Source of the DNA: Dimorphilus gyrociliatus
Lineage: Eukaryota > Animalia > Annelida
Assembly: GCA_904063045.1 (NCBI GenBank)
Contig: CAJFCJ010000012.1
Span: 2,351,180 to 2,415,179 of the forward strand
Direction of reading: 5' to 3'
Length of the DNA stretch: 64,000 bases
A program made the position numbers and the translations under genes. Shown in pieces: positions 981-37,420 of this stretch. The notes beneath the pieces were generated by a model. It did no database searches and was not told where the DNA came from. It saw nothing but the letters and a program-made list of their open reading frames with translations. The first letter of the stretch is position 1; the number at the start of each line of letters is the position of its first letter.

Positions 981-1761
981 ATGTCAATTGTATTTCTTAT
1001 ATTTATTGTCTTCTGTCCAACACAAATCTATATGATAGAAGCACGAACAGGTGCTACAGGTAAATCGCATCTTTTGCTTTTCCTTCTCTTTTCAATAATA
1101 CAACACTTTTCCTTCTTTTCTACTTTTTTTTTACAAGGTGATACCGGGCCTAGAGGACATACAGGATTCACAGGATATCCAGGACCAATTGGCCCAATGG
1201 GAAAAACGGGCGCAACAGGTAGTAAGGGCATAACTGGTGCGACTGGATATCGTGGTATGCCAGGACCAGTAGGACCCCCCGGACCTCCAGGAAAGACACA
1301 ATTTAACGGTACAGAATCTAACGCTACGCAGAAAATTCTTCAAGGTAAATCTCTTAAGTCTTAAATAAAGATTTCAAATTTTTGTCTGAAATGGATAAAA
1401 CTATAATTTTCAGGTGAAAAATCGAATCTAGAAGCTCCGGCCATGGCAACATCGGCACTTTCATTCGTTTTGAGTATTTTAAGCGTCATTCAGATAGTTT
1501 TCTTAAGATTTAAAATTAAAAAATATGATAATTCGCTTATAAAGAAGAACGAAATTAAAATAAATAAAAATGAAGAATCTCCTAAACAGAAATTAACGAT
1601 GAAGAAGAACATTTATTATCTTCCAGATGAAATTCCGTAACTATAATCAATGTATATTTATTAAATAGTACATATGTTATACTTTAATTAGGCATGGAGA
1701 AGTTCGTTTAGAACGTAAAATGTCGATAATGTCAGGAGAATATTTGGATTTACAAGATTAG
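981..1761 (+). CDS. Type-I transmembrane mini-collagen A (signal peptide, 19 Gly-X-Y, TM, Tyr-motif tail; ~192 aa)
   Basis: Exons 981-1059, 1138-1344, 1414-1636, 1692-1761, all GT-AG, phases 1/1/2, frame consistent. Product: [23 protein letters not shown]-(GAT...GKT x19)[11 protein letters not shown]...-[30 protein letters not shown]...[33 protein letters not shown]. Confidence 0.8.
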
Positions 1762-1812
1762 CGATTTAGTCTCACTCCATTCCACTACTCTCTCTCTCTT
1801 CGTAAAAACTTA

Positions 1813-1817
<5 letters not shown>

Positions 1818-1842
<25 letters not shown>
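1818..1842 (+). repeat. (TA)n microsatellite
   Basis: TA run between the two collagen-like genes. Confidence 0.9.
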
Positions 1843-1853
<11 letters not shown>

Positions 1854-2175
1854 AATTTATATAAGTATATTAATATATTAGTATATAGACAGTATATATA
1901 GAAATACAATCAGCTTATAGAGACATGCTGTATTACTATCTTTGATGAATTTTACTATATTTTTCATTCATATATATATGGATTAATGATTCTTAATAAA
2001 ATAATGAAATAACAAAAAACACGATCATGAGTCATATTATATAATACAATCAGTTTGGGAAGTTTTAACAATATGGGCTTATATATATATATAGCCTATT
2101 GCTAACATCCTACTGGGAACAAATATCATATTCAAACGTAGATCATTTGATCTTGTAAATGAAAAGAGTAAAGTT

Positions 2176-2881
2176 ATGTATGAATTTACAGTTTTTATAA
2201 TATTTTTACTCTTTTCGTCTGGAATCGGCGGGAAATATTACGTAGGATACACAGGCAATACTGGTTAGATTTGCTCTACTGTTCTTCTTTTATAATTTAA
2301 TCCTCCTTATTTTAAGGGATGGCTGGTCCATTTGGCCATCCGGGAGAAATGGGAGCGCCTGGCACCATAGGTAAAGAAGGAAAAAGAGGAGTAATGGGCG
2401 AAACTGGAGAGCCGGGAGAGGTTGGTCCAACTGGACCCACTGGCCCCAGAGGTCCAACTGGAGCTACAACTATTATAAACAAAACAATTGATCATATAGA
2501 AACTACGACAGGTAACTTTTAATACTTTTGAATCAAATTGCTAAAATATAAATTTAAAAAAGATGTTGTTCCAAGTAAACTGTCAGCGGCCCTCTATATC
2601 TCATCAATATCTATTATAATAAATCTACTCTGTTATCTCGGAACCTGTTCTCTAACTAGAAGATTAGAAAGGATGAAAGATATAGGAAAGGAAAGTTTGC
2701 GTACCAAGCGCTCCCTACCGCAACGCCCTAAAAACATCTACGAGTGAGTATTACAGTATTACAGAGTATAGAAAAAGCAGAATAAATCATTTCAAATATT
2801 TCATTTCTCCCCAACAGTGAATTGAATAGTTTATCATTAGGAATATGGGGGAAGAGCAACGACGTCTATCAGGAGATTTAA
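2176..2881 (+). CDS. Type-I transmembrane mini-collagen B (signal peptide, 19 Gly-X-Y, TM, Tyr-motif tail; ~175 aa)
   Basis: Exons 2176-2263, 2317-2511, 2563-2743, 2818-2881, GT-AG, phases 1/1/2. Product: [23 protein letters not shown]-(GYT...GAT x19)-TIINKTIDH...-[33 protein letters not shown]...[27 protein letters not shown]. Confidence 0.8.
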
Positions 2882-4180
2882 TCGATATTAAATATTTTAA
2901 AAAGAGAAAAAAACCCAACTTTTGTGTTCAAAATGTAAAGATTTTTATACAAATACAAAATTGACTTGTATAATAAATTGAATATCGAATTAATTATAAA
3001 TCCTATTGCTTTTTTCGTGGCACACATATTGGATAATCTTGCTATTATTTCATATAGTTTGAGAAAGATACTTTCTGACCCATGTGAATTAGCGTTAAGC
3101 TCTTCCCTATCATATAGAAAAACAAAAAAACACTTATTTAGATTCGAACAGCGTGTGGGAAATCGTGATAATTAAAAGAGAGAGAATCTTAAATATAACC
3201 TGTGGTAAGCGTAAGAGATTGAAGCTTAGCTTAAGAATCTATTGTACGAAAAGCAGGAGATTCTGTCCTAGAAAGTGTGATTAATTTCGAATCTTAGTGG
3301 TAAATAGACGCAAGAAAAATCACGTGATTATGTTTTACAGTAAAAAAAAAAAACTCCATCTATCACATAAACATTTCAATACTATTTTGGAGTTTTTACG
3401 TGTTACGAATGTTGCCATTCTACGTTAATAGTATATGAACAAGAAGTACATAAATAAGCCATTTGGAGAAAAGGATAACGACCTTTGTATCTATTTTTAT
3501 CAATATTTGCCATTATTAGCATTCCGCGAATGGTTCGAAAATCATATGTTATTTAAGGAATTCAGATTAATTGCTAAAAGCAATTTTAACAATTGATCAC
3601 GTGATATCCATTTATCTAATTATTACTATTATTATCTGCACTGTATCAAGTAAAATTTAAAGTTGCGTGGTCAAGTCAAAACTCAGTCGAATATCACCAA
3701 AGCCTAAATAGTTAATTACATACATTTGTAAAGAATCCTTCAACCATTACATTTAGAATAATGGGATTGTTTGCTATTCATCCTTATCGAAATACCAATA
3801 TGTTGTTAGTTAACGAACGACTGACAAAAACAACAATCCCAAAGGGAAATATGAATATTTTAAGAATTATGTACAATCTAAAATCCATCTATTTATCAAT
3901 TTCGAGTACTTTTATATAAAAAAGAAAGAACAAACAATTAAAAAGAAAGTTTGTTTTCTTTTCCTTTTTAATTTTCAAAATAAATCTTTTTATTATGAAA
4001 AAAAAAGAAAAATTTGGTTAATATCTTGAAAAAAAACGGTTTTTTGTGGTTTTTTTTTTGTTGAACAAAACTAAGCTAGTAACAGATTACAAAATGAATA
4101 CGTAAATTATTATTATTGTTGCTGTTGTTGATGTTATTATCATTATTATCATTATTATTATTATAATAATTCCTCTGTAT

Positions 4181-6640
4181 TTATTTTATACCAGCGACAT
4201 CCTTCAAGTGCTGTATAAGATTATAGATCTTCAAAGATGTTGATACTTTTATACCTGCTAAATGGCTCATATCCTCTTTCTTTAACGAAAGGAAGCCTTT
4301 TCCGTCTATACCCTATTTATTTAAAATAGATTTTGTAGAAAAAACATAAAATAATTGCTTAAGGATTATATTGTTTCTTTTTTTTAGAAGATTACCTTTT
4401 TACTAAAACTTTCGGCAAGGTTTCCGCAGTCGTTTCTTTTTAAAAAGACAACAACGTCTTCAACCGTCCAATTAAGGGGATCAATTTTTTGCTGATCGAC
4501 TCCCGGTGCGAAAGTGTACATAATTGAACTTTCGTCGGTGTCGTCTTCGACGTATTTCGGGATATTTTTGGTCAATTGAATGGATCTGAAGGGTGATAAA
4601 GCGCTAACAAGTGCTGGATGAGTTACGGCTTTTGGAGCGATAGGCCTTGGCAAAGTTGATTCGCTTAAAGCTTTGCAAAAATTAAAAATCAAAACTAGCT
4701 ACGCAAAAAACATTTTATTATCATTTTAATTCATTTACCAGATTTATCGTGTTGAATAGATGAATTTTGTTCGACAGAGCTCTTTCTCCTTTTTATTGTT
4801 GATCTTTTCTTTCTATTTCCTTTTCCTTTACCAGTTATAGTATTCTCCTTCAAGCCATTTGCGGCGGCTGAGCCTGGTGGAACTTCTAACGTATGGCCAA
4901 CCATTTCGCACCAGCCGATGGGGTAAATGTCGGATGATTCGCAATCAACCCATTGATCGTAAGCTTCCGACCAACCATCAAATCTGATACGAAGTAGCCG
5001 ACCGGCAATCTTATGTACAGTTGCAACGCATACTAAGTGAGGTGATATTAGATCGGCAGCTTCTAATTTTTGACCTTCTTTGAAGGTATGAGCGGGTAAC
5101 TCCTTTAAAGAAAAATACGTTTACAATCATTAGAATTCAACAAAAACAATGTCTTTACTTTATCGAATAACTTTACAGGAGCCAGCTTTGCGGCGTTATC
5201 GTTTAAATAAGTTTGCCAGTCAAAATTCTCCTTATGAGACAATGGAGGAGTTAAATCCAGTCCGTAATAATCGCAATAACCGGCTGGAAGGAGGCAAGGA
5301 CTCGATTTATGATAGCAAAACCAGTCTCGACCAGGCATGACTGGATTTACGTCGAATGATATCATCATATTTCCTCTATCCAATAATTTTGAAACGCTTG
5401 CTACAGTAATTTCGCTTAATTTAAATGGATTAATTGCTTCCAGCTTCATTCCCTCTTCAAATTCAATGTCGTTTTTTGATTCAGCAGCTACCTGCTGTGG
5501 AAACATTTCGGGGGAAGCATCTTTGTCATCGTAAGAAATAGCGTTGGAAACTTTTTGAGATGATAAATGTCGATATAAAGCTATCAGTGAATATAAATAA
5601 TATAAATAAAATACAGTTTTAAATTATATATTATGTTTTGAGATAGTTAATACCTGGTACATTGGGATCCATAGCATGACCTGAATTTTCACACCAACCA
5701 ACTGGATGAAGGACGGGAGAGAGATAATGGCAATAAAAGAAACCGTCTTCTTCTGCCTAATTTATGCAATAAAAAAAAGATTAGATAAACTATTAAAGCT
5801 ATTTTAAAAAATTTCAATACTTTAGATTCAGCAGGTGGGCATATATAATCTATGTGTAGTCTACCTCCAGTTGAACTTTTTATTCGACCTGGCAGCATTG
5901 TATCTAAAGCAACTTTATTCAATATTTCCACATTCATGCCAACTTTTAAACCATTTGGTAGTTCAAGACATCTTTTTATGCTATCTCGAAAGTTTCTTGG
6001 TATAGTGTAAGCCCCGTCTAGCCTCTTGAACAAAAATGATTCCCAGCAGTCCGTTTTATCAATAATAGCTATTAACATTGCAATATTATATTATAATTGT
6101 ATTTATGCCATTGTACTATAAGCAAAAGTTTATATACTTACAATTGGGAGGAGACAAGTTTGCTCCGTTCTCGGCACACCATCCCACAAAATGCAAATCG
6201 TCAGATGCAAAATGAGTCCAGAATTCTAAATTGGGCAGTGCAACTTCACTTTCATACCGTAAGAGCAGATATAGTCCTGAGATTTTTACAATTGAAGCGA
6301 TCCAATACATTGGCTCTTTAACATGAGGAGCTGGATCAGTATTTACAACTTCTACAAGAACTCCCGGTTTAATATGCTGCCATAATTCTGCTATTGACAA
6401 CTGAAAGAAGAAAATTCCAATATATATTATTTTAAATAACTCTTTTAATCCTTTCTATCTAATATTTACATGTTTAAAATTTGAAGAACAGGCAGCTTCG
6501 AATCCAGCTTCATCAAGAGAACAACGCCAATAATAACCCGACGATTGAGGAGGAAATTCCTTTCCTAGGAGAAGACTACGATAAATATTTGTATATCTAT
6601 AATACATGTACAAACCGTTCTCAAAAATTGTCATTGTCAT
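4181..6640 (-). CDS. Sfmbt: MBT-repeat Polycomb-group protein with C-terminal SAM domain (Drosophila Sfmbt / L3MBTL2 / MBTD1 family); 5' end uncertain
   Basis: Multi-exon. MBT repeats include YWIASIVKISGLYLLLRYE...FVGWCAENG, GMKLEAINPFKLSEITVASV...PAGYC, and GQKLEAADL...FDGWSEAYDQWVDCESSDIYPIGWCE. SAM domain: WTVEDVVVFL...GIDGKGFLSL...LKIYNLI. Stop at 4181-4183. Confidence 0.88.
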
Positions 6641-7291
6641 TTGCTTCAGTAGACCCAAGTATCCAGTTCGTAGGGGCAAACTGTAACTTTTGCTACTAAC
6701 AAAAACAACTCATCCAATCTGCAACAGAGTTATGCAGTGCATATTATTTCTAAATAAATTTTATTTTATTCAAAACTTTAAAAACAGACTTGTACAAAGA
6801 AATTTTCGAATAGTTTTAATCAAAAAATGTAAACCGAAAATAAAGATTTGCACGAAAAAGTGAAAATTGTCGTGATTGGATAAGACAAGCATTGTATTCT
6901 TGAAGCTAATTGGCTTAAATGCCCGCCAGCAAAAACTGGTAAAAATGTACAAAACAAAGTTTGTTTCATTTTATAGAAAAGAGCAGATAATTTTAAATAT
7001 TCAATAAGAAAGTATTTATTTTTATTAACATCCAAAGTATAAACGAATTTTTTATAAGACTATTAAAAAAATTTCTTCTTGTTCTTTGTTCGTTGTCTTT
7101 AATTTTCATAAAGCTTACATCATTTTAGCATATAAGACTTTGGATTAACTTTTACATATATTATTGTTAGAACAGACAAAGAAACAATAATTAAAAGTTT
7201 AAGTAAACTTGAGTAGAATATTGGAATGCTTCTAATGAAATAAATTAACAAGAATGAAATATACGGCAAGTTAAGTAAACTTAAAGAAATA

Positions 7292-9003
7292 TTAATGTCT
7301 GCGGTTTATATAAGGATTTAACGGATGTTTTCTGTTAACAAAATGTATGTTGTAGCAACAGTATCTTTCTACGCCTGTAATATCAGATTTAAACGATGTT
7401 CGAAAATTTGTTCTCGAATGAAAAATACTAAATCCAGTATTTTTCAGTTCAAGGATAACTCTATACATAAATCTCAGAGTGTCACCTTTTGCCCAGGTAC
7501 ATTTATTGTTAGGTTTAGTATGAATATCCATTTCTGGAGTATGAAATTCCACAGCCAATTGACGAATCTTATGAATAGAACCAGATTTTATCATTTCATA
7601 TAATGCTGGCCATTCAGAAAATTCAACATCTAATTTTAGGTAATCTATATGTCTGTCTTCGTGTCCTAGTTCTTTTAGAATCGATCCAAATGTTTTTAAT
7701 CTCCAATTTCCCATAATTGATAGGCCATTTTCATGATCAATTCCAATATTATGAAAGTAGATACTGTCGGAATATTGATAATCTTCCTTGTTCATACTAT
7801 TTGAAAACAATTGAACAATTATTTATAATGAATTATATTTTTTATTATTTTATATTTCTCTTTACCTAGGATCGAAAGCATGAACTTCGCAACCGAAACG
7901 ATCTTCAATTCCTTCTTCAAATCTAAAATCATTATCTATACCAAAGGAATAGACAAGGCAAGGTGTAGAAAATCTATAAGATGCATCTAAGCAGATATCC
8001 CATCCTCCATCTTCAGGTGGTCCAATCCTTTCTTGGCTATTTTTTTGTTTTTAAATTCCAAAAATTTTCATTATTATTTATTAAGCAAGAAATGTTAGTT
8101 TATGAATTCCGACTTGTCTTGCCTATGATGTCGGATGAATATAAAATAGGACAACTATAGTACTAGTATTGAGACTAGTAAATATGAACCTATTCAATCA
8201 AATTTTGAACTAAACTACAATATTCAAACGATTATAAAGTGGATACTTATCCTTTGAAATATCATTCAACAAAAACGGCGTGAGAACTTCTAATTAGTCA
8301 AAATGGTGGACAAAAATGGAGTTAGTTATAGTAAACTTTTAATGGTATGGTTCAAAGGCTAAAGTAGATAAATTAACTCAAGAAAAAGAAGAGAGAATGT
8401 TCCTAAAATTTCTTAAACAACTCTTTTGCGATCTAGATAAATGATACGAAATGACAATTGACGACATCCAAGAGAGATTGAAAGAAAGAATAGAATCTGA
8501 ATTGAACGAGCAGCGCCAAGATGAGATACTTAGAGGAACTTTTATACCTTATTAATCTTACTGATAAACATAAAACCTTTCCTTACCTTTCACACATAGT
8601 TGTAATAGTTGATAGAGTCCTAAAATATGAATCCTCTATATTAAATAAATCATAGCCAACACCATCCAAATATCTTCTTCTTTCCCCACTATCTTTAATC
8701 ATCATCTATTTAGAATTTTAATGAATAACCGTAAACATTAATATTTAAACATTTATGAAAGAATGAAGTCTTTAGTTTAAAAGTTGTCTTTACCTCTGCT
8801 ATTCTAGTTTTACATCCAATTGCCGATGTATAACGCTTTCTAGGATAAAAGCAATAAATTACTAATGAAACAAGGAAGATTACGCAGAGTAATTTAGCCA
8901 ATTTTTTCGTTGGAATTTTTTCGAAATATGCACTTTTATATAATTGAAACTTTATCTTTAATATGTTCATCGAAGGGGATGGTTTCTTCAAAATATGATG
9001 CAT
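7292..9003 (-). CDS. METTL24: METTL24-like type-II membrane methyltransferase (Methyltransf_22 family)
   Basis: Exons at about 9003-8794, 8706-8588, 8039-7868 and 7797-7292. N-terminal TM anchor; motifs RIGPPEDGGWDIC, CLVYSFGIDNDFRFE, CEVHAFDPS and IDYLKLDVEFSEW. Confidence 0.82.
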
Positions 9004-9768
9004 TGTCAATCCTAGTATTGTATTAATAGTAACAAAAATCTATCATAATTTAAAAGTCGTTTGAATATACAAGTATTTTGCATCAACAAATGTCACAATT
9101 TTTTCAACGATATTAGAGGTAAGAGCAAAAAAAAACTAAGAGCAAAATATAATATAAACTGGTTATATTTCATATATTCGATATGTATTTAAAAATATAA
9201 ATAACTCTTTATAAAGTTGTAAATCTGTCAAGTTATTCAGCTAATATGATACTTTAAGTATTTATTAGTTTTAGTTGTATTTTTTTGCTTTGTTGTTATA
9301 TTGGTCGAAATAATTATAAATAACAAGTACATATATGCGAAAAAGGAATTTTAAGATTGTATTCTTTAACTATACTTGCTCTTTTATTAAATATCAAAAT
9401 AAAGTTTTAAGAAATATTTTTAAGGGATGTTTTTTTTTTACAAAAACAATATTCATTTATATAATGATATATATCTAATTTTTACATATTATATTAGAAT
9501 TAACTTTAAAGAGAGACAAGATATTTATAAAAAAAAAAGACTCTTAAAGCTATAAATTCTATATATGTTTATATTGAATTTATTTAACAATAAGTCTTAA
9601 GAAATGTTGTTTATGATAAATTTCAAAACTTGAAAAAGCCCATAATCAATAAGGATAATAAAGAAGCACAAAACACTCCATTTAAAGTCACCAGTTAACT
9701 CCAGAAATTTGAACGATAATATAAACATTTAAGAATTCGTATAATTCCTTTTCCGTATTAAGATTCTG

Positions 9769-11642
9769 ATGGGAGCAGAAACAAGTTCGTATGCTGACTT
9801 GACATTCGAGAAAAAAAATTACAATTACGATGACAAAGTTTGGAAATTTTCAAATGCGTTCAACGACGATGATGTCGTTTCTGTGTTTAGCCTAAAATGT
9901 GAAACAAATTCTAGTGAAACTTTTTTAAAAAAGGCTGTCAAGGTGCGTTTCTAAAACAAATATATATAAAACAATCAATTTTTTCATAAATAGCACTTGA
10001 AAACGCTTAAACATCCTGGGATTATAAAATATGTCGCCTTTCACGATGAAAACATAATTACAGAAAGGGTTACACCTCTTTCTTATGTCCTCGACAAATT
10101 AAACCCATATGAAATATCAGTTGGATTAGTTGATATAATTAATACAATCACATTTCTTCATAACGTAAGTAATTGAAAAAAAGTGATTAATATATTTAGG
10201 CAGACGTTTTATGCTTAGTTTTGTTTACTTAACATCTGTTACAGGCTAAACTTTCACATAATAACATTAGCCATAAATCAATATTTGTTGATTGTTGTGG
10301 TCGCTGGAAATTAGGAAATCTTGAAGTTCTATGCAATTTTGATGATCAGACAGAAAATCACACAAAATTATGTAATTCTTTAATTGATGAAGACTATGTT
10401 CCCGAAACAACAGTAAAAAATATTCCTTATTGCTAAAGCTCACTTTTACTTTATTCATTGTTTTATGTAAAATAGCATCAGTTCAGAGATCATTCTAGAG
10501 ACGCATATACCTTTGGAATACTTTGTTTAAAGTTAATAGACTACATGAGAAGTCTTGAAGGTAAATTATATACTTTTCCAAAGTAATAAGAATAAACTGT
10601 AACATTTATTCTCTATTCATTTCTTACAGCAAATTCTATTAAATCTTTTACATTGAGACTTCAAAATGATATTCTCTCTGGAAAAGAAATTTGTAAACTA
10701 GATACTTTATTGGACGAACCACTTTTAAGGTGAATAAATTATACTCTATTAGCTAATTTTAATATTTATTCAGGATATTTTCAAATGTATGTACTCAACA
10801 TTCATTGATTTTACTATTTTTTATATGTAGAAATGACTATGTTGATATTATCAACTTTCTAAGAAATATAACTTTAAAAAATGAAAATGAAAAGAAGGAT
10901 TTTTTCAAGTAATGATTAATTTTTATTTCTTTTGTTTTTTTAAAAAAAAATTAATTTTCTCTTCTCGCTTTATATTTTTAGAAACTTAGCCGAGAGATTG
11001 TACAAATTACCGGAAAAACTTGTTGCGTCAAGATTAACAAAACTTCTTTTATCAAGATTTGTTCTGTTAGATCAAACTGCTATTGAAGATTTTATCCCTC
11101 ATCTATTAGTTCCGAGTTTTGGTAATGAACTAATTATATTAATATATACATATATATTAATACTGTATATATATATATATACGTTAAATTACCTGTCACG
11201 CATCTCTTTCACTAATTTAGCCGAAACTAGACCTGAGAAAGTTGATATGTCTATTCATTATCCTATTCTAACTACTAAGCCTTTCAAAAAACACGTCATT
11301 CCTGAAATAACAAAGATATTTCATGTCAGAGATTTTCATGTGAGGCATGCCCTATTGAAATATTTCGAAAGCTATTACAGACTATTCGATAAAAGAGAAT
11401 TATCCGATATAATTTTACCAGAAGTAATTTAAATAACATATAATAATATAATTTGTAATCGATATTTATTTTTTTTACAAATACTTATCTTTTATCTTCA
11501 GATCTTAACTGGACTTCGGGATGAAAATGATACAATTGTTTCTTTGACTTTAATTGCCCTAGCATTTTTAACTCAAATACTAGGATCTCAAGTGGTAGTT
11601 GGAGGCCAGCGTTTAAGAATCTTTCAAGTTGCCAGTCCAAAA

Positions 11643-16943: not shown

Positions 16944-19900
16944 TTAACTATTCTTCGATATTTGTGCATTAATCCAGTCAACGTAGCTGGAAACTCTCGT
17001 AAATACACCTGGTTTCTTTGCCATTGCACATCCAACTCCCCAACTTGTTATGCCGTGTAGATAATATCTTCCGTCAGGACCCTTTGAACAGACTAGTGGA
17101 CCTCCGCTGTCACCCTGACAGGCATCCTTTTGACCTTCTGGATAGCCGGCGCACACCATCTCTTTCTTGTTAACACTCATTCCCAAATAATCTGGTTTGC
17201 TGCATTGTTCGTGACCTACAACTGGAAGAATAACTTGTTGAAGTTTTGCGCTGCCTTTGCTATCGCCGAAATGAGTTGCTCCCCAACCAGTTGTAAAGCA
17301 AAGTTTATCAGCTTCAACGTGTTCTTTGGTTAGACAAATTGGTTGTACTTCGTTATTGAATTTAATCTCCGTTGTTGTTTTGAATAGGGCAATATCGTTA
17401 TGCTAATAGAAAAATATATATTTATATTTATTTATAACTGTGAGTGAAGAGAACGATCGATTATTGATCTTTTGGAATACTTACATATCCTCTTGTATCG
17501 TAATTTTCGTGTATAATTAACTTGTCAACCTTGTGGTATTTTTGAGATCTGTCAGTCTTTGATCTATCGTGTTCACCTACAAGGATCCTCCAGAAATTCA
17601 TTGGATAATTTTTTCCACCGTTTACGCAATGAGCAGCGGTTACAATCCAACGGCTATTGATAATACTTCCACCGCAAACATGACCATAATCATCATTCGT
17701 ATAACTCCTTTGAGTTTGAGCTCTTAGCGAAATTTGCCATGGCCAAGAGTGAGGATTGGCTTCAATTCCACCGACGATACGTCCAAATTTGGGAAGGATT
17801 TTGGGCGATCCGCAAGTTTCAACTGTTGGAACGTCCTTTTGCGAGTAGGTGGCAATGAAACCCTTGTCCATAACGGTAGCGTCGGATTTAAATTCAATGT
17901 ACAATTTGTTATTAGAAGCGGTGATTTCATCAGGAATCTCGTCTCCGCAAAGACGCTTTAAGAGTTTCTTTTCACCATCAATTACTTCGTAAATATTGAC
18001 GTGATCATTGGTACATCCCATAGTTTCTTCAACGCTAAACATGGAGAAAGTTAAATGGACTAGTTTACCAGAAACGACTTCAATACTCCACGCGCATCTG
18101 GCCATATTTGGATATTGTTTTTCGACATTGTACATGGGAGATCGGAATTCACCTTCCGGAGCTGTCAATGTTAAAGTTTTGCCACCACAGCCCGGATGAA
18201 CTTTACGGATATAATCCCTCTTGATAAATTCTATTTTAGCTTCAAAACCTTTAAAACTATTTGTGCCGTCGGAAGCGAATTGAAGCAAAAGCTTGTTATT
18301 TGAAGAGGTAATTCCCTCTGAAGTTGGACTATGCTCGTTGCAGTATTTGCCTAATAGAACTCTTTCGTCGAAATTTTGACCATCATAGGCCGTGAGAGAA
18401 TCGAAAAGGCATGAAAACTCTTCTTCAATATCAAAGGTTTTGAATGTAAGGCGAACAACCTGAAAAAACAAGATTTATCAAAAGGATAATTGATTAAACG
18501 ATTCTCGAATACTTACAAAGTCGGCTGGTGCTTCAATTAGCCATTGACAATTGGCATCTTCCGGATAAGTGTCTAGGACGCCATAACCCGGGGAAACAAG
18601 CATTTTACTAGAGGATGTTATCTTTGCTGGCGATCCTTGACAACCAGGAGTTTTGGCTAAGATTTCGCTGGAAAGACTTTTCTTAATGAAGGTGATTACA
18701 CCCTCAAAACCAGCACCAGAAGGATTCGAACTAGAAACAAGACGTATAAAGAGGTGTCTTCCAGAACTGGGTAAGATCTCTTCCGGTTGTAGTTTATGTC
18801 CATTGCATACTTTTGCCAAACTAGTGGCTGATGCTGAATCACCGTCGAATATCTCAACATAATCAGTATCGCATTTCAGAGAGCCAAAATCGAAAAATGA
18901 GAATCCAAATTCAATAAGTTTGTCTTCGGGCGCTTCTATTAAATAGCTACAATCCGCATTGGATGGAACAACATTGGCACTTGAAACAATTGGAGATTTA
19001 AATCCAGATTCGGTTGTAATCTTTTTCGGAGATCCATTACATCCTGGTGTCCTTTTAAGAACATCCTTTGACAGCTTATGAACTATTTTTGGATGAAAAA
19101 TATAGGTTGTAGGAAAAGGAGGAATGCCAGGTCGGGTATACTAATGAATATTTACTTACAACTCACTGTTGGTTCTGGCGTTGTGGGAACTGGAGCTTTA
19201 GTAGTAGTTGGTCTGGGTGTTGTAGTAGGTACGGGATTCTTAACGAATTGGAATTTAATAATAAAACCACTTCCACCTCCATTTTCATTGGAAGAGAAAT
19301 GGACAAGGGCACTGTTTTTGTCAAAGTCGATATATCCATTTTTTGGTTTGTTATTATTACAGAATGGACCAATACTGGGATCGGAAGCTTCATTGGGCCC
19401 ATCGTAGATTTCTATACTATCTTCACGGCAGGCGAAGGATGATTGAATGTCGAATTGATCGAATTTTAGGCTGACGTGCTAGCGAATTTCGAAAGAGTAC
19501 TTATTAATAATTTATACATTAATATATTTAAAGATGTTTCCGCTTACATAGCCAGTCGGTGCTTGGATTAAGAAATAACAATCGGAATTTGGCGGGTATT
19601 GACCAGATGTTGTTAATGGTCCAACGAGGCGAACGTCTGGATCAGATACGACTGTTTGGCGTCCATCGCATCCTGCTATTGGCCTGTATTCTTGTTGTTT
19701 ACCAGTAGCACTATATGTCAGTTTAAATCCCTTATTGTTGGAAGTGAATGCGTCTGAATGGAATTTAACGCGGACGGTATCATAGTTTGTCGAAAGAGAC
19801 GCCGGTTTTTTGTTGCCGCAATATTTCGTACTCTTAACAGGAGAACCGTTGGATACGTAGGTAATTTCTAGATAGTCGTATTCACAATCTCCCGAGTGAT

Positions 19901-20718
19901 CTTCCTCAACATCGAAATCGTCAAAGTCGATTTTTACTTTACCAGTAGAGCTCTTAACGATGTATTCACAATCCAACGAGGTAGGATATTTACGAGGATA
20001 ATTAGGACTGGTAATTTCTCCACCAACATCTGCATTCAACTGTTTGGATTCTCCTAAGCATTCTTGGGGAACTAGAGACGAATGTATTGATAATATAACT
20101 TGGAATCAATGAAGTTAATAGCAATTAGGAATTGATCTACTTACGAACACGTTTACTCAGACTGTTCTTTCTTTCTCTCAAAAGCTAATAAATAAAGAAA
20201 GCAATTTAAATATGCGAATTAAAAGTCAACTCTTTCTCTCTCTTTATCTCTGTAAGCCTATTAAATCCCCTCCCTTCATTCAATCATAGATCCTTTAGTT
20301 CTATATATATTCTTGATACTATTTATTTACTAGGGTTCATTTACTTTCACAGGCCTAGATCCTATAAAGTATATATCAAATTTAATACAAGACTTTCCAC
20401 TTGAAAAAAAAGAGGCTTGGTTAAAGTACTAAAGATCATTATTAATCTTCCTAAGAGAGAGAGAGAGAGAGAGAGAGAGTATGTGTGTGTGGACTTTAAT
20501 ACAAACCTTGAGAAGAAGATTCAAATCCTTAGAGGAAGAGCTTCTTTTCACTTTCTTTCTAAACGAATATGAGGAGGGTGAAGGGTGGGAAAGAGAAATA
20601 CGCAATTGTTAAATATTTAGGATTATTTAGAAAATAAAAGAGATTCTTACTCATTGAATTCAGCGGTGAGAAAACCACCAACAATGGAGATAAATACCAG
20701 TAACGAAAGAAATCGCAT
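16944..20718 (-). CDS. Secreted serine protease: signal peptide, 5 CUB domains (PT-rich hinge after CUB2) and C-terminal trypsin-like domain
   Basis: Signal [19 protein letters not shown]; five CUB repeats (GCxG...SPxY...CxW/YxI...); activation site CG...GR-IVGG; triad motifs TAAHC, NDIAL and GDSGGPL; KDAC (Asp189-type S1 pocket). Confidence 0.9.
20454..20479 (+). repeat. (AG)n microsatellite
   Basis: AG run in intron 1 of the CUB-protease gene. Confidence 0.9.
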
Positions 20719-36084: not shown

Positions 36085-37325
36085 CCTGTAAAATAATTGA
36101 AAGCTTAAAGGAAAGATTTATTGAAATGAATATCCAATAAGCCTAATATCGTACGCCTTAAACTGCACTGATAAAAGGCAAGTTTTAGCTGATTGTCTCT
36201 GTTTTACAGATAGTCTAATCATGTGTTGAGCATAAATCGGTTGAGATAAATTGTGACTGTATCATTTAATTACTACATTGAATATAACATTAACAATAAA
36301 TAATTTATGTTCCCGTGTTAACCATGCTGTCTATAAATCCCTCGTTTCCTCTTATACTAATATATATATATTTATATAAACATATCTTCATGTTACTTTC
36401 TATATACATGGTATTTTTAGCATCTCTGAGCATCTTGAATAGATTGCTCCCGATTCGTTAAAATATATAATTATATACAGAGATTATTCACCTTATAGAA
36501 GAATTCTTTCATTCATTTGCAGTATGGCCTTTCCTTTATTGAGACAGATGTAATTGTCCCTTACAAATTTTAGTATACTCCACTAGACGGTGCTGTCTTG
36601 GATCACCAACGGCTTATTAATTATCGATTTTTTGCATCGTTTTCACGTTGTAAAATCTTTATCAAGCAAAATGTAAACGTGTTTTCCTAAGTTATTAAAC
36701 CACTAGCAAACGTTTTCTTTTCCTCGAGCAGCAAGATAGAAGAAACTGCTTCCACCTACATTAAAAGACTATAGATTGCAGGCAAGCACCAACGCCATCT
36801 AAGTAATTTTAATATATTATTTATAGCGGTGGGCGCCTCAAAAAGAACATTTCAAAATTTAATCAAACATTTTTCAACTCTTTCCTTCATTTGCAAATAA
36901 ATCAATTGTGTCAGGTATTATTTACATTCAACTAGTAATTAACTCATTACTTAAATATTTCATTATTTATCTCCCTCTCGTTCGTTCGATCTCTCTTTTG
37001 GCCTATCTCCGTCAATGTACAGATGTTGAGAAACAAATTTTTTATTTATTCAGTTTGTTAAAATTTAACCAGTTCTTTATTAATCTTTAAATAAATAACA
37101 CTTTTTTAATTAAAAGAAAGTCTTTGAGCCATTTTACGCTGAGAATTTTATAGCAGTAATCCTTACTTCAGTGCCATCTATTGTATAAATTATTAATACT
37201 TATTAGAGTTAGGCGAAGGTTGTCTATATCGTGTATAAATTGGTAAAACACCGACTTGCAGATTTTTTTTATATCTATCTTTTAGTCTACGGAGAATTGC
37301 TCTGTCAATAAGAGTCAAAAAGTAG

Positions 37326-37420
37326 CATCTCCGGTGGGACTCGAACCCACAGCCTCCGAATATCTTTGAAAGATGTCACCGACTAGAAGTCCGACGCGCT
37401 ATCCATTGCGCCACGGAGAC
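37326..37420 (-). tRNA. trnR-TCT: tRNA-Arg(UCU) with a 22-nt intron
   Basis: GTCTCCG TGGCGCAATGGATAGCGC GTCGGA CT TCT A [GTCGGTGACATCTTTCAAAGAT] ATTCGG AGGCT GTGGG TTCGAGT CCCAC CGGAGAT G. A and B boxes are intact; the intron lies after position 37 and contains a small ATCTT/AAGAT hairpin. Confidence 0.95.

Follow-up and report, generated by a model that had tools for sequence, protein, structure and literature searches.

Cnidarian minicollagens are small secreted proteins with a signal peptide and a helix of 12-16 triplets, bordered by polyproline and Cys-rich flanks. The STP-C and STP-A proteins of Herpesvirus saimiri carry about 18 collagen triplets and a C-terminal anchor; in these proteins collagen serves to oligomerise a signalling adaptor, and STP-A also contains a tyrosine motif that binds Src. 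A review of the membrane collagens places MACITs, ectodysplasin, colmedins and class A scavenger receptors without exception among the type II proteins (PMC7848082). Folding of the known membrane collagens starts at an N-terminal membrane-proximal coiled coil. A different group of small membrane proteins, the transmembrane adaptor proteins, has as its defining features a TM helix, Cys residues beside the membrane and tyrosine motifs such as YxN (PMC3342071). Literature searches on membrane collagens and their closest analogues found no type I mini membrane collagen; the words "type I transmembrane collagen" occur only within "collagen receptor", which refers to Endo180.

The DNA analysed here is a stretch of 64,000 nt (the window), to which all positions refer. 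The window is AT-rich (~31% GC) and gene-dense, and its other genes are those of an animal, encoding CUB-trypsin, Kv channel, Tudor and MBT proteins. At 981-2881 it holds a pair of genes, termed A and B, each of which encodes a predicted small collagen with a C-terminal TM helix. No other collagen runs were found in the 64 kb.

Results

Genes A and B are expressed as separate spliced transcripts

Translation of the exon plan gave open frames of 192 aa for gene A and 175 aa for gene B. The features of the two genes are as follows.

935-980, + strand: gene A 5' UTR, within a (CT)n tract; the contig reaches ~38 nt 5' of the ATG
981-1059, + strand: gene A exon 1; ATG, signal-type hydrophobic segment, triplet GAT and the G of the second triplet; phase 1; joint 1059/1138
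1138-1344, + strand: gene A exon 2; 18 Gly-X-Y triplets, start of the stalk, sequons NGT and NAT; covered by contigs; PF01391 at 39.3 bits
1414-1636, + strand: gene A exon 3; remainder of the stalk, TM helix, basic stop-transfer, tail; 69% identical to the orthologous ORF P0002
Within gene A exon 3: TM helix, residues 105-126, nt 1440-1505; YDN, 1524-1532; NIYYLPDE, 1608-1631
1692-1761, + strand: gene A exon 4; end of the tail, C-terminal SGEYLDLQD (1732-1758), stop codon; joint 1636/1692
2176-2263, + strand: gene B exon 1; ATG, signal-type hydrophobic segment, two triplets and a G; phase 1; covered by contigs
2317-2511, + strand: gene B exon 2; 17 triplets, stalk, sequon NKT; covered by contigs; PF01391 at 38.6 bits
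2563-2743, + strand: gene B exon 3; stalk, TM helix, basic stop-transfer, tail as far as KNIY; from contigs and comparison with the orthologue
Within gene B exon 3: TM helix, residues 101-126, nt 2580-2657, with the conserved CYLGxCS (2631-2651) at its end
2818-2881, + strand: gene B exon 4; end of the tail, conserved C-terminal VYQEI (2864-2878), stop codon; joint 2743/2818

Among public runs this stretch was found in X1 only. Spliced contigs of X1 match the window at 100% identity and skip exactly six introns, with exon joints at 1059/1138, 1344/1414 and 1636/1692 in gene A and at 2263/2317, 2511/2563 and 2743/2818 in gene B. The introns (1060-1137, 1345-1413 and 1637-1691 in A; 2264-2316, 2512-2562 and 2744-2817 in B) all have GT..AG ends. 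They separate exons of 79/207/223/70 nt in A and 88/195/181/64 nt in B, and their phases are 1, 1, 2 in both genes. An earlier note on this DNA had described tandem genes with a four-exon plan and these phases, naming use of the junctions as a check on the models; with six of the six junctions present in spliced transcript contigs, the plan was confirmed throughout. Since the contigs lack the six introns they must derive from mRNA, though the run type is unrecorded, and since A and B lie on different contigs the two genes give separate transcripts. Genes A and B are real, expressed, paralogous genes. Their paralogy follows from gene structure, tandem position and architecture; sequence lends it no support, as BLASTP of A exon 3 against B exon 3 returned no alignment.

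The 5' UTR of gene A is defined by the second contig, which has 117 nt beyond gene A exon 2. The (CT)n tract at 935-967 forms the 5' UTR and promoter-proximal part of this gene. Upstream of it, an 882-nt X1 contig ends at 400-593 on the - strand, indicating an expressed neighbour on the opposite strand. The transcript contig of gene B begins at 2127 and includes an upstream ATG; the resulting out-of-frame uORF of 13 codons (2159-2200) overlaps the main start at 2176 and may dampen translation of B.

Two introns have reading-frame properties of their own. Intron 1 of gene A (1060-1137) is 78 nt long, in frame and without stops, and a mechanical ORF call (888-1364) reads through it. Its retention would add 26 hydrophobic residues between triplets 1 and 2; in the contig it is spliced out. 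At intron 3 the donors give an immediate in-frame stop in both genes, CCG|TAA in A (1635-1640) and GAG|TGA in B (2742-2747). Retention of this intron would leave tails that lack the conserved last tyrosine motif, and no retained forms were seen.

Elsewhere in the window, large exons at 17461-20039 (- strand) code for a trypsin-type serine protease preceded by several CUB domains, a layout judged by eye to be ovochymase or tolloid-like. The one Rfam match in the window is a tRNA-Thr(AGU) at 37325-37420 (- strand; 54 bits). With 95-96 nt it exceeds the usual length of a tRNA, which makes an intron probable.

Both proteins are predicted to be type I membrane proteins with one short collagen helix

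Each protein contains 19 uninterrupted Gly-X-Y triplets, counted at residues 24-80 in A and in B, as had been noted earlier. A detail missed in that first reading is the placement of intron 1, which follows the first triplet in A and the second in B; the total of 19 is made up of 1+18 triplets in A and 2+17 in B. Pfam Collagen (PF01391) is matched at 39.3 bits by A and 38.6 bits by B, above the cut-off of 27.2, and both proteins belong to the collagen triple-helix repeat proteins of this family. Beyond Collagen there was no Pfam match in A or B, and the exon 3 pieces scored at noise level. If helical, the segment would be ~16 nm long (0.286 nm per residue). Pro occupies 21-34% of the X and Y positions, and 19 triplets with this Pro content may be marginally stable. 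The earlier note had stressed how far the X and Y residues of A and B have diverged, and indeed just 8 of 38 are identical between them.

The topology was predicted from hydrophobic segments and flanking charges. The N-terminal hydrophobic runs of A, B and their orthologues A' and B' (described below) begin at residue 3-5 and span only 9-13 residues, with small residues after them (SSG in B, VSG in A', IEA in A). A run of this kind is typical of a cleaved signal peptide and, by heuristic judgement, too short for a membrane anchor. The single segment of membrane-spanning length (at least 22 residues) is C-terminal in both proteins (105-126 in A, 101-126 in B). Directly after it come the basic residues RFKIKK in A and RRLERMK in B, and then the tail, in keeping with the one TM segment, basic flank and tail given in the earlier note. 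By the positive-inside rule, K/R at this position predicts that the tail is cytoplasmic. From the N-terminus, the predicted order is therefore signal peptide, lone mini-collagen helix, TM helix and, on the inner side of the membrane, the tail.

On this prediction the ectodomain consists of 2-10 residues, the 57-residue helix and a stalk of 16-25 residues with sequons, and the tail on the cytoplasmic side is 50-65 aa long. There is no globular domain, and no head domain for ligand binding was found in A or B. The sequons are those listed in the earlier note, NGT and NAT in A and NKT in B, where N-glycosylation is predicted. Cys residues are few: one in A (residue 12, in the signal) and two in B (residues 118 and 123, in the TM helix).

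A related species carries both genes

A phmmer search with A exon 3 against 1.84 billion representative proteins gave a single match, P0002 (69% identity, E 5e-20), an ORF called on genomic contigs from four further runs. The corresponding locus, L001, is collinear with window 1-11 kb, and its neighbour genes are 75-88% identical in protein. It holds orthologues of both genes, A' and B', with the same four exons, GT..AG ends and phases. Protein identity is 58% for A/A' and 40% for B/B'. Synonymous sites are saturated, and dN reaches 0.36 between A and A' and 0.62 between B and B'. The mini-collagen pair is, on these values, evolving faster than its neighbours, yet constrained, and we infer that A and B are old tandem paralogues.

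Some observations concern the locus more widely. Synteny between window 4175-11000 and L001 6440-14048 includes MBT-repeat, Methyltransf_22 and IP_trans genes and others, all of which have diverged far less than the mini-collagens. The orthologue A' has a CT-rich tract in the corresponding position on its 5' side (L001 3196-3245); the shared tract may be a conserved polypyrimidine or GAGA-type promoter element. In the related species, read-through of intron 3 continues for ~48 codons, as seen in P0002.

Homology searches were carried out with exon-level or ORF queries. Searching the non-collagen part of A had been suggested in the earlier note, and the orthologue was its sole match; no described family was reached. 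A word search of 5.8 billion proteins, in which the query was A read through its stop-free intron 1, returned only P0001, an unrelated Thr-rich collagen-like protein that was rejected. The B' ORF and P0002, used as queries, matched themselves only, and A exon 3 yielded nothing usable when its features were searched in the ESM Atlas. No further relatives were found by word search, phmmer or ESM Atlas. The databases hold few spliced small animal genes, so this failure is weak evidence of absence. The view that the architecture belongs to no known family also held: Pfam gives the generic collagen repeat only, and the membrane collagens reviewed are all type II.

Glycine periodicity is retained while the helix surface drifts

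All helix Gly residues are kept in A, B, A' and B', with no interruption. In contrast, X/Y identity across species is 11/38 for A/A' and 4/38 for B/B'. Retention of Gly periodicity while the X and Y residues drift is the mark that selection leaves when it acts on a triple helix and not on any one surface. Such a pattern bears on the possibility that no triple helix is formed and that each protein is a small membrane monomer whose Gly-X-Y run is a glycosylated, flexible spacer of polyproline-II type. The shortness of the helix, its moderate Pro content and the lack of a recognisable trimerisation domain fit a spacer. Nevertheless, Gly is unbroken at every third position in four sequences in which X and Y change freely, and a length of 19-20 triplets has been kept over saturated synonymous divergence, which a simple spacer would not need. 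A spacer is for these reasons very improbable.

Other features of the helix were compared across the four proteins. Thr is frequent at the Y positions of A, A' and B (7-9 of 19-20) and scarce at those of B' (3). The C-terminal end of the helix is imino-rich in all four, over 10 residues in A and 13 in B, and as GPMGPPGPPG in A' and GPPGAPGPT in B'. An N-x-S/T sequon follows 3-4 residues past the helix in 4/4 proteins; its retention at this place supports a stalk that is, as predicted, luminal or extracellular.

Helix length and charge do not specify an A/B heterotrimer

The earlier note had gone on from identical helix lengths and from charge to a model in which A and B form an obligate heterotrimer, equal length being selected for register and complementary charges guiding assembly. 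The genes are in tandem and both are represented in run X1, and A and B each have their 19 triplets at residues 24-80. The charges are as the note had counted them (5 K/R and 1 D in helix A; 4 K/R and 5 E in helix B), so that A is net +4 and B net -1 and one axial K-to-E pair from A to B is possible.

The related species departs from this in length and in charge. Triplet counts in A, A', B and B' are 19, 20, 19 and 19, and selection on an exactly identical length was thus not borne out. Where A' has GFT, A has ART, and A seems to have lost its first Gly. From these counts the helix length appears to be held to about one triplet, not exactly. Charge was scored, for hetero- versus homotrimers, as the number of pairs between chains in which a basic residue at Y lies opposite an acidic residue at X in the following triplet. 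This gave 0-1 pairs, too few to discriminate between the two, with 1 for A to B and 0 in the related species, where A' and B' are both net +3 and no KGE/KGD-type pair arises in any combination. Because the contrast in charge is missing from the related species, the argument for a heterotrimer loses its basis. A and B differ, besides, in their TM stripes and tails. An obligate A/B heterotrimer is accordingly rated distinctly unlikely. As far as the sequences can tell, a charge code for it is absent, and homo- and heterotrimers are equally compatible with them. Of the first interpretation, the predicted type I mini-collagen architecture is supported; the exact length and the charge-guided heterotrimer are not.

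Conservation is concentrated in the TM helix and the cytoplasmic tail

The TM helix of A and A' has T, S, S, S, S and Q on one helix face, spaced 3-4 residues apart. The polar moment is 0.70 against 0.32 in shuffles (p ~0.015). In B and B' the TM helix retains S, S, N, C and G/T with equal spacing, but the polar-face test did not reach significance there (p 0.14 for B and 0.29 for B'). A Gln (A/A') or Asn (B/B') in the middle of the TM helix is conserved. Gln or Asn placed mid-membrane drives helix association.

The tail is the region of A under the strongest constraint (dN 0.26). The tails of A and A' share KIKKYDNxLIKKN and two further blocks of 12 and 19 residues. Common to B and B' are CYLGxCS, where the TM helix meets the tail, and KRSLP, KN(I)Y and GKxNxVYQEI, the last before the stop. 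At the codon level, three motifs, including the 19-residue block and VYQEI, have undergone synonymous changes only (3, 4 and 3). The last nine residues of A are identical in the orthologue, again with synonymous changes only, and VYQEI is identical in B' with three synonymous changes. Synonymous-only change in these motifs indicates that the terminal exons, which lie behind apparent stops, are coding and constrained.

These data also bear on a precursor role, in which the TM helix would merely aid chain assembly and the mini-collagen would then be shed into the matrix, much as MACIT ectodomains and the cuticle collagens of nematodes are freed. Membrane collagens are often shed (PMC7848082; PMC10538796). 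RxxR or dibasic sites are, however, absent between helix and TM in 4/4 proteins, and the strongest constraint falls on the cytoplasmic tail. A shed precursor appears extremely improbable.

The conserved tail motifs contain tyrosine

The conserved tyrosine motifs are YDN, YYLP and C-terminal YLDL in A/A', and KN(I)Y and C-terminal YQEI in B/B'. The first tyrosine motif of B differs between the species, YDEL in B versus YGQF in B'. We take YYLP to be of the pYxxP type, YQEI and YDEL to be of the Src-SH2 type and YLDL to be YxxL. YxN, as in the YDN of A, is a ligand motif for Grb2-type SH2 domains (PMC3342071). The spacing is YDEL-14-YQEI in B and YGQF-14-YQEI in B', and in A/A' 23 residues separate Tyr164 from the Tyr of YLDL; compared with an ITAM (YxxL/I, 6-12 residues, YxxL/I), the arrangement is not that of a strict ITAM and is ITAM-like at best.

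Motifs of YxxΦ form fit plain endocytic sorting as well, and this reading of the tail is the main rival to signalling. A and B would then be structural or adhesive membrane collagens that tie the cell surface to the matrix or cuticle, a task performed by collagens XIII and XVII with their reversed orientation, and their tail tyrosines would be sorting or endocytosis signals. YLDL, YDEL, YGQF and YQEI all match YxxΦ, and a collagen ectodomain without any other domain suits an adhesive function. Against this, there is little surface for binding on a sparsely charged rod of 16 nm, and the most conserved part of A, its tail, carries YDN and YYLP, which are not YxxΦ. Adhesion combined with sorting is consequently considered unlikely.

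Discussion

The TM helix and tyrosine motifs are conserved and the X/Y residues are not, which suggests that collagen serves here as a trimerisation device for signalling and not as matrix material. We propose, at about even confidence and on the pattern of conservation, that A and B are collagen-zipped, trimeric type I receptors or transmembrane adaptors that would recruit SH2 proteins when phosphorylated. That they represent an undescribed class of surface-signalling proteins, with a minimal, TM-nucleated collagen helix that clamps three phosphotyrosine-motif tails together and possibly senses a ligand for them, is put forward more tentatively, at somewhat less than even confidence.

In the proposed mechanism, removal of the short signal peptide would leave an ectodomain made of one collagen segment of 19-20 triplets on a glycosylated stalk. 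Three chains would associate through TM helices that bear the conserved polar stripe with its central Gln (A) or Asn (B), and this TM bundle would set the chains in register and nucleate the helix. The triple helix would then zip from its imino-rich, membrane-proximal end towards the N-terminus. Collagen is known to fold in this direction, by C-terminal nucleation followed by a zipper to the N-terminus (PMC11923368). The helix is possibly stabilised by hydroxyproline and by glycosylated Thr at Y positions. Glycosylated Thr stabilises the cuticle collagen of another annelid (PMC11923368), and (GPT)10 peptides are made helical by it (PMC11766948). Once zipped, the helix would keep the three cytoplasmic tails together, and their tyrosines, when phosphorylated, would recruit SH2 proteins. 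The Cys pair of B at the inner end of the TM helix may be palmitoylated.

If this is true, a C-terminal anchor can also support the building of a collagen helix, and the classical C-to-N zipper would begin at the membrane. The ectodomain would consist of helix alone, on a type I protein that is the mirror image of all known membrane collagens. With ~170 mature residues, A and B would also provide a tractable model of membrane-nucleated triple-helix folding.

Comparison with known systems

Among membrane collagens, the MACITs (XIII, XXIII, XXV and COL-99) and collagen XVII are likewise single-pass proteins with a collagenous ectodomain; theirs is trimeric, and its folding is thought to begin beside the membrane. 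MACITs are, however, large type II proteins with a cytoplasmic N-terminus, several interrupted helices and furin/ADAM shedding (PMC7848082). A and B differ from them in having an N-terminal signal, a single helix that runs unbroken for 19-20 triplets, a TM helix at the C-terminal end and a tail with tyrosine motifs, and in lacking a furin site. Type II proteins have an N-terminal cytoplasmic domain and a signal-anchor TM, neither of which is recognised in A or B by sequence heuristics. In place of the several collagenous domains and furin-type site of a MACIT, a single helix was found, with no RxxR or dibasic site. SR-A/MARCO, ectodysplasin and colmedins likewise place a short, trimerising collagen stalk on a membrane protein; they are type II and carry an SRCR, TNF or olfactomedin head (PMC7848082), whereas A and B are headless and have the opposite orientation.

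Cnidarian minicollagens have a very short helix in common with A and B. The Cys-rich domains and polyproline flanks of that family are absent from the present pair, which has a TM helix and a tail instead. STP-C and STP-A are viral, lack a signal peptide, have their collagen part in the cytoplasm and are unrelated to A and B in sequence.

The adaptors LAT, NTAL, PAG, LIME, SIT and TRIM are small, single-pass and non-enzymatic, with juxtamembrane Cys as in B and YxN as in A. A and B likewise have one TM helix, no enzymatic domain and a tail with several conserved tyrosine motifs, traits that mark a functional class and not a homologous family. LAT-type adaptors belong to vertebrate immune cells, have no collagen and are unrelated in sequence, so the likeness is a functional analogy only. 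Their ectodomain is a few residues long; that of A and B comprises ~80 residues of collagen and stalk. The Cys pair of B resembles the palmitoylated juxtamembrane Cys of these adaptors with a different spacing (PMC3342071): CYLGxC in B and B' is CxxxxC and not CxxC, and A has no such Cys. We regard A and B as a variant form among the membrane-anchored collagen-like proteins, in which collagen plausibly has a new functional use.
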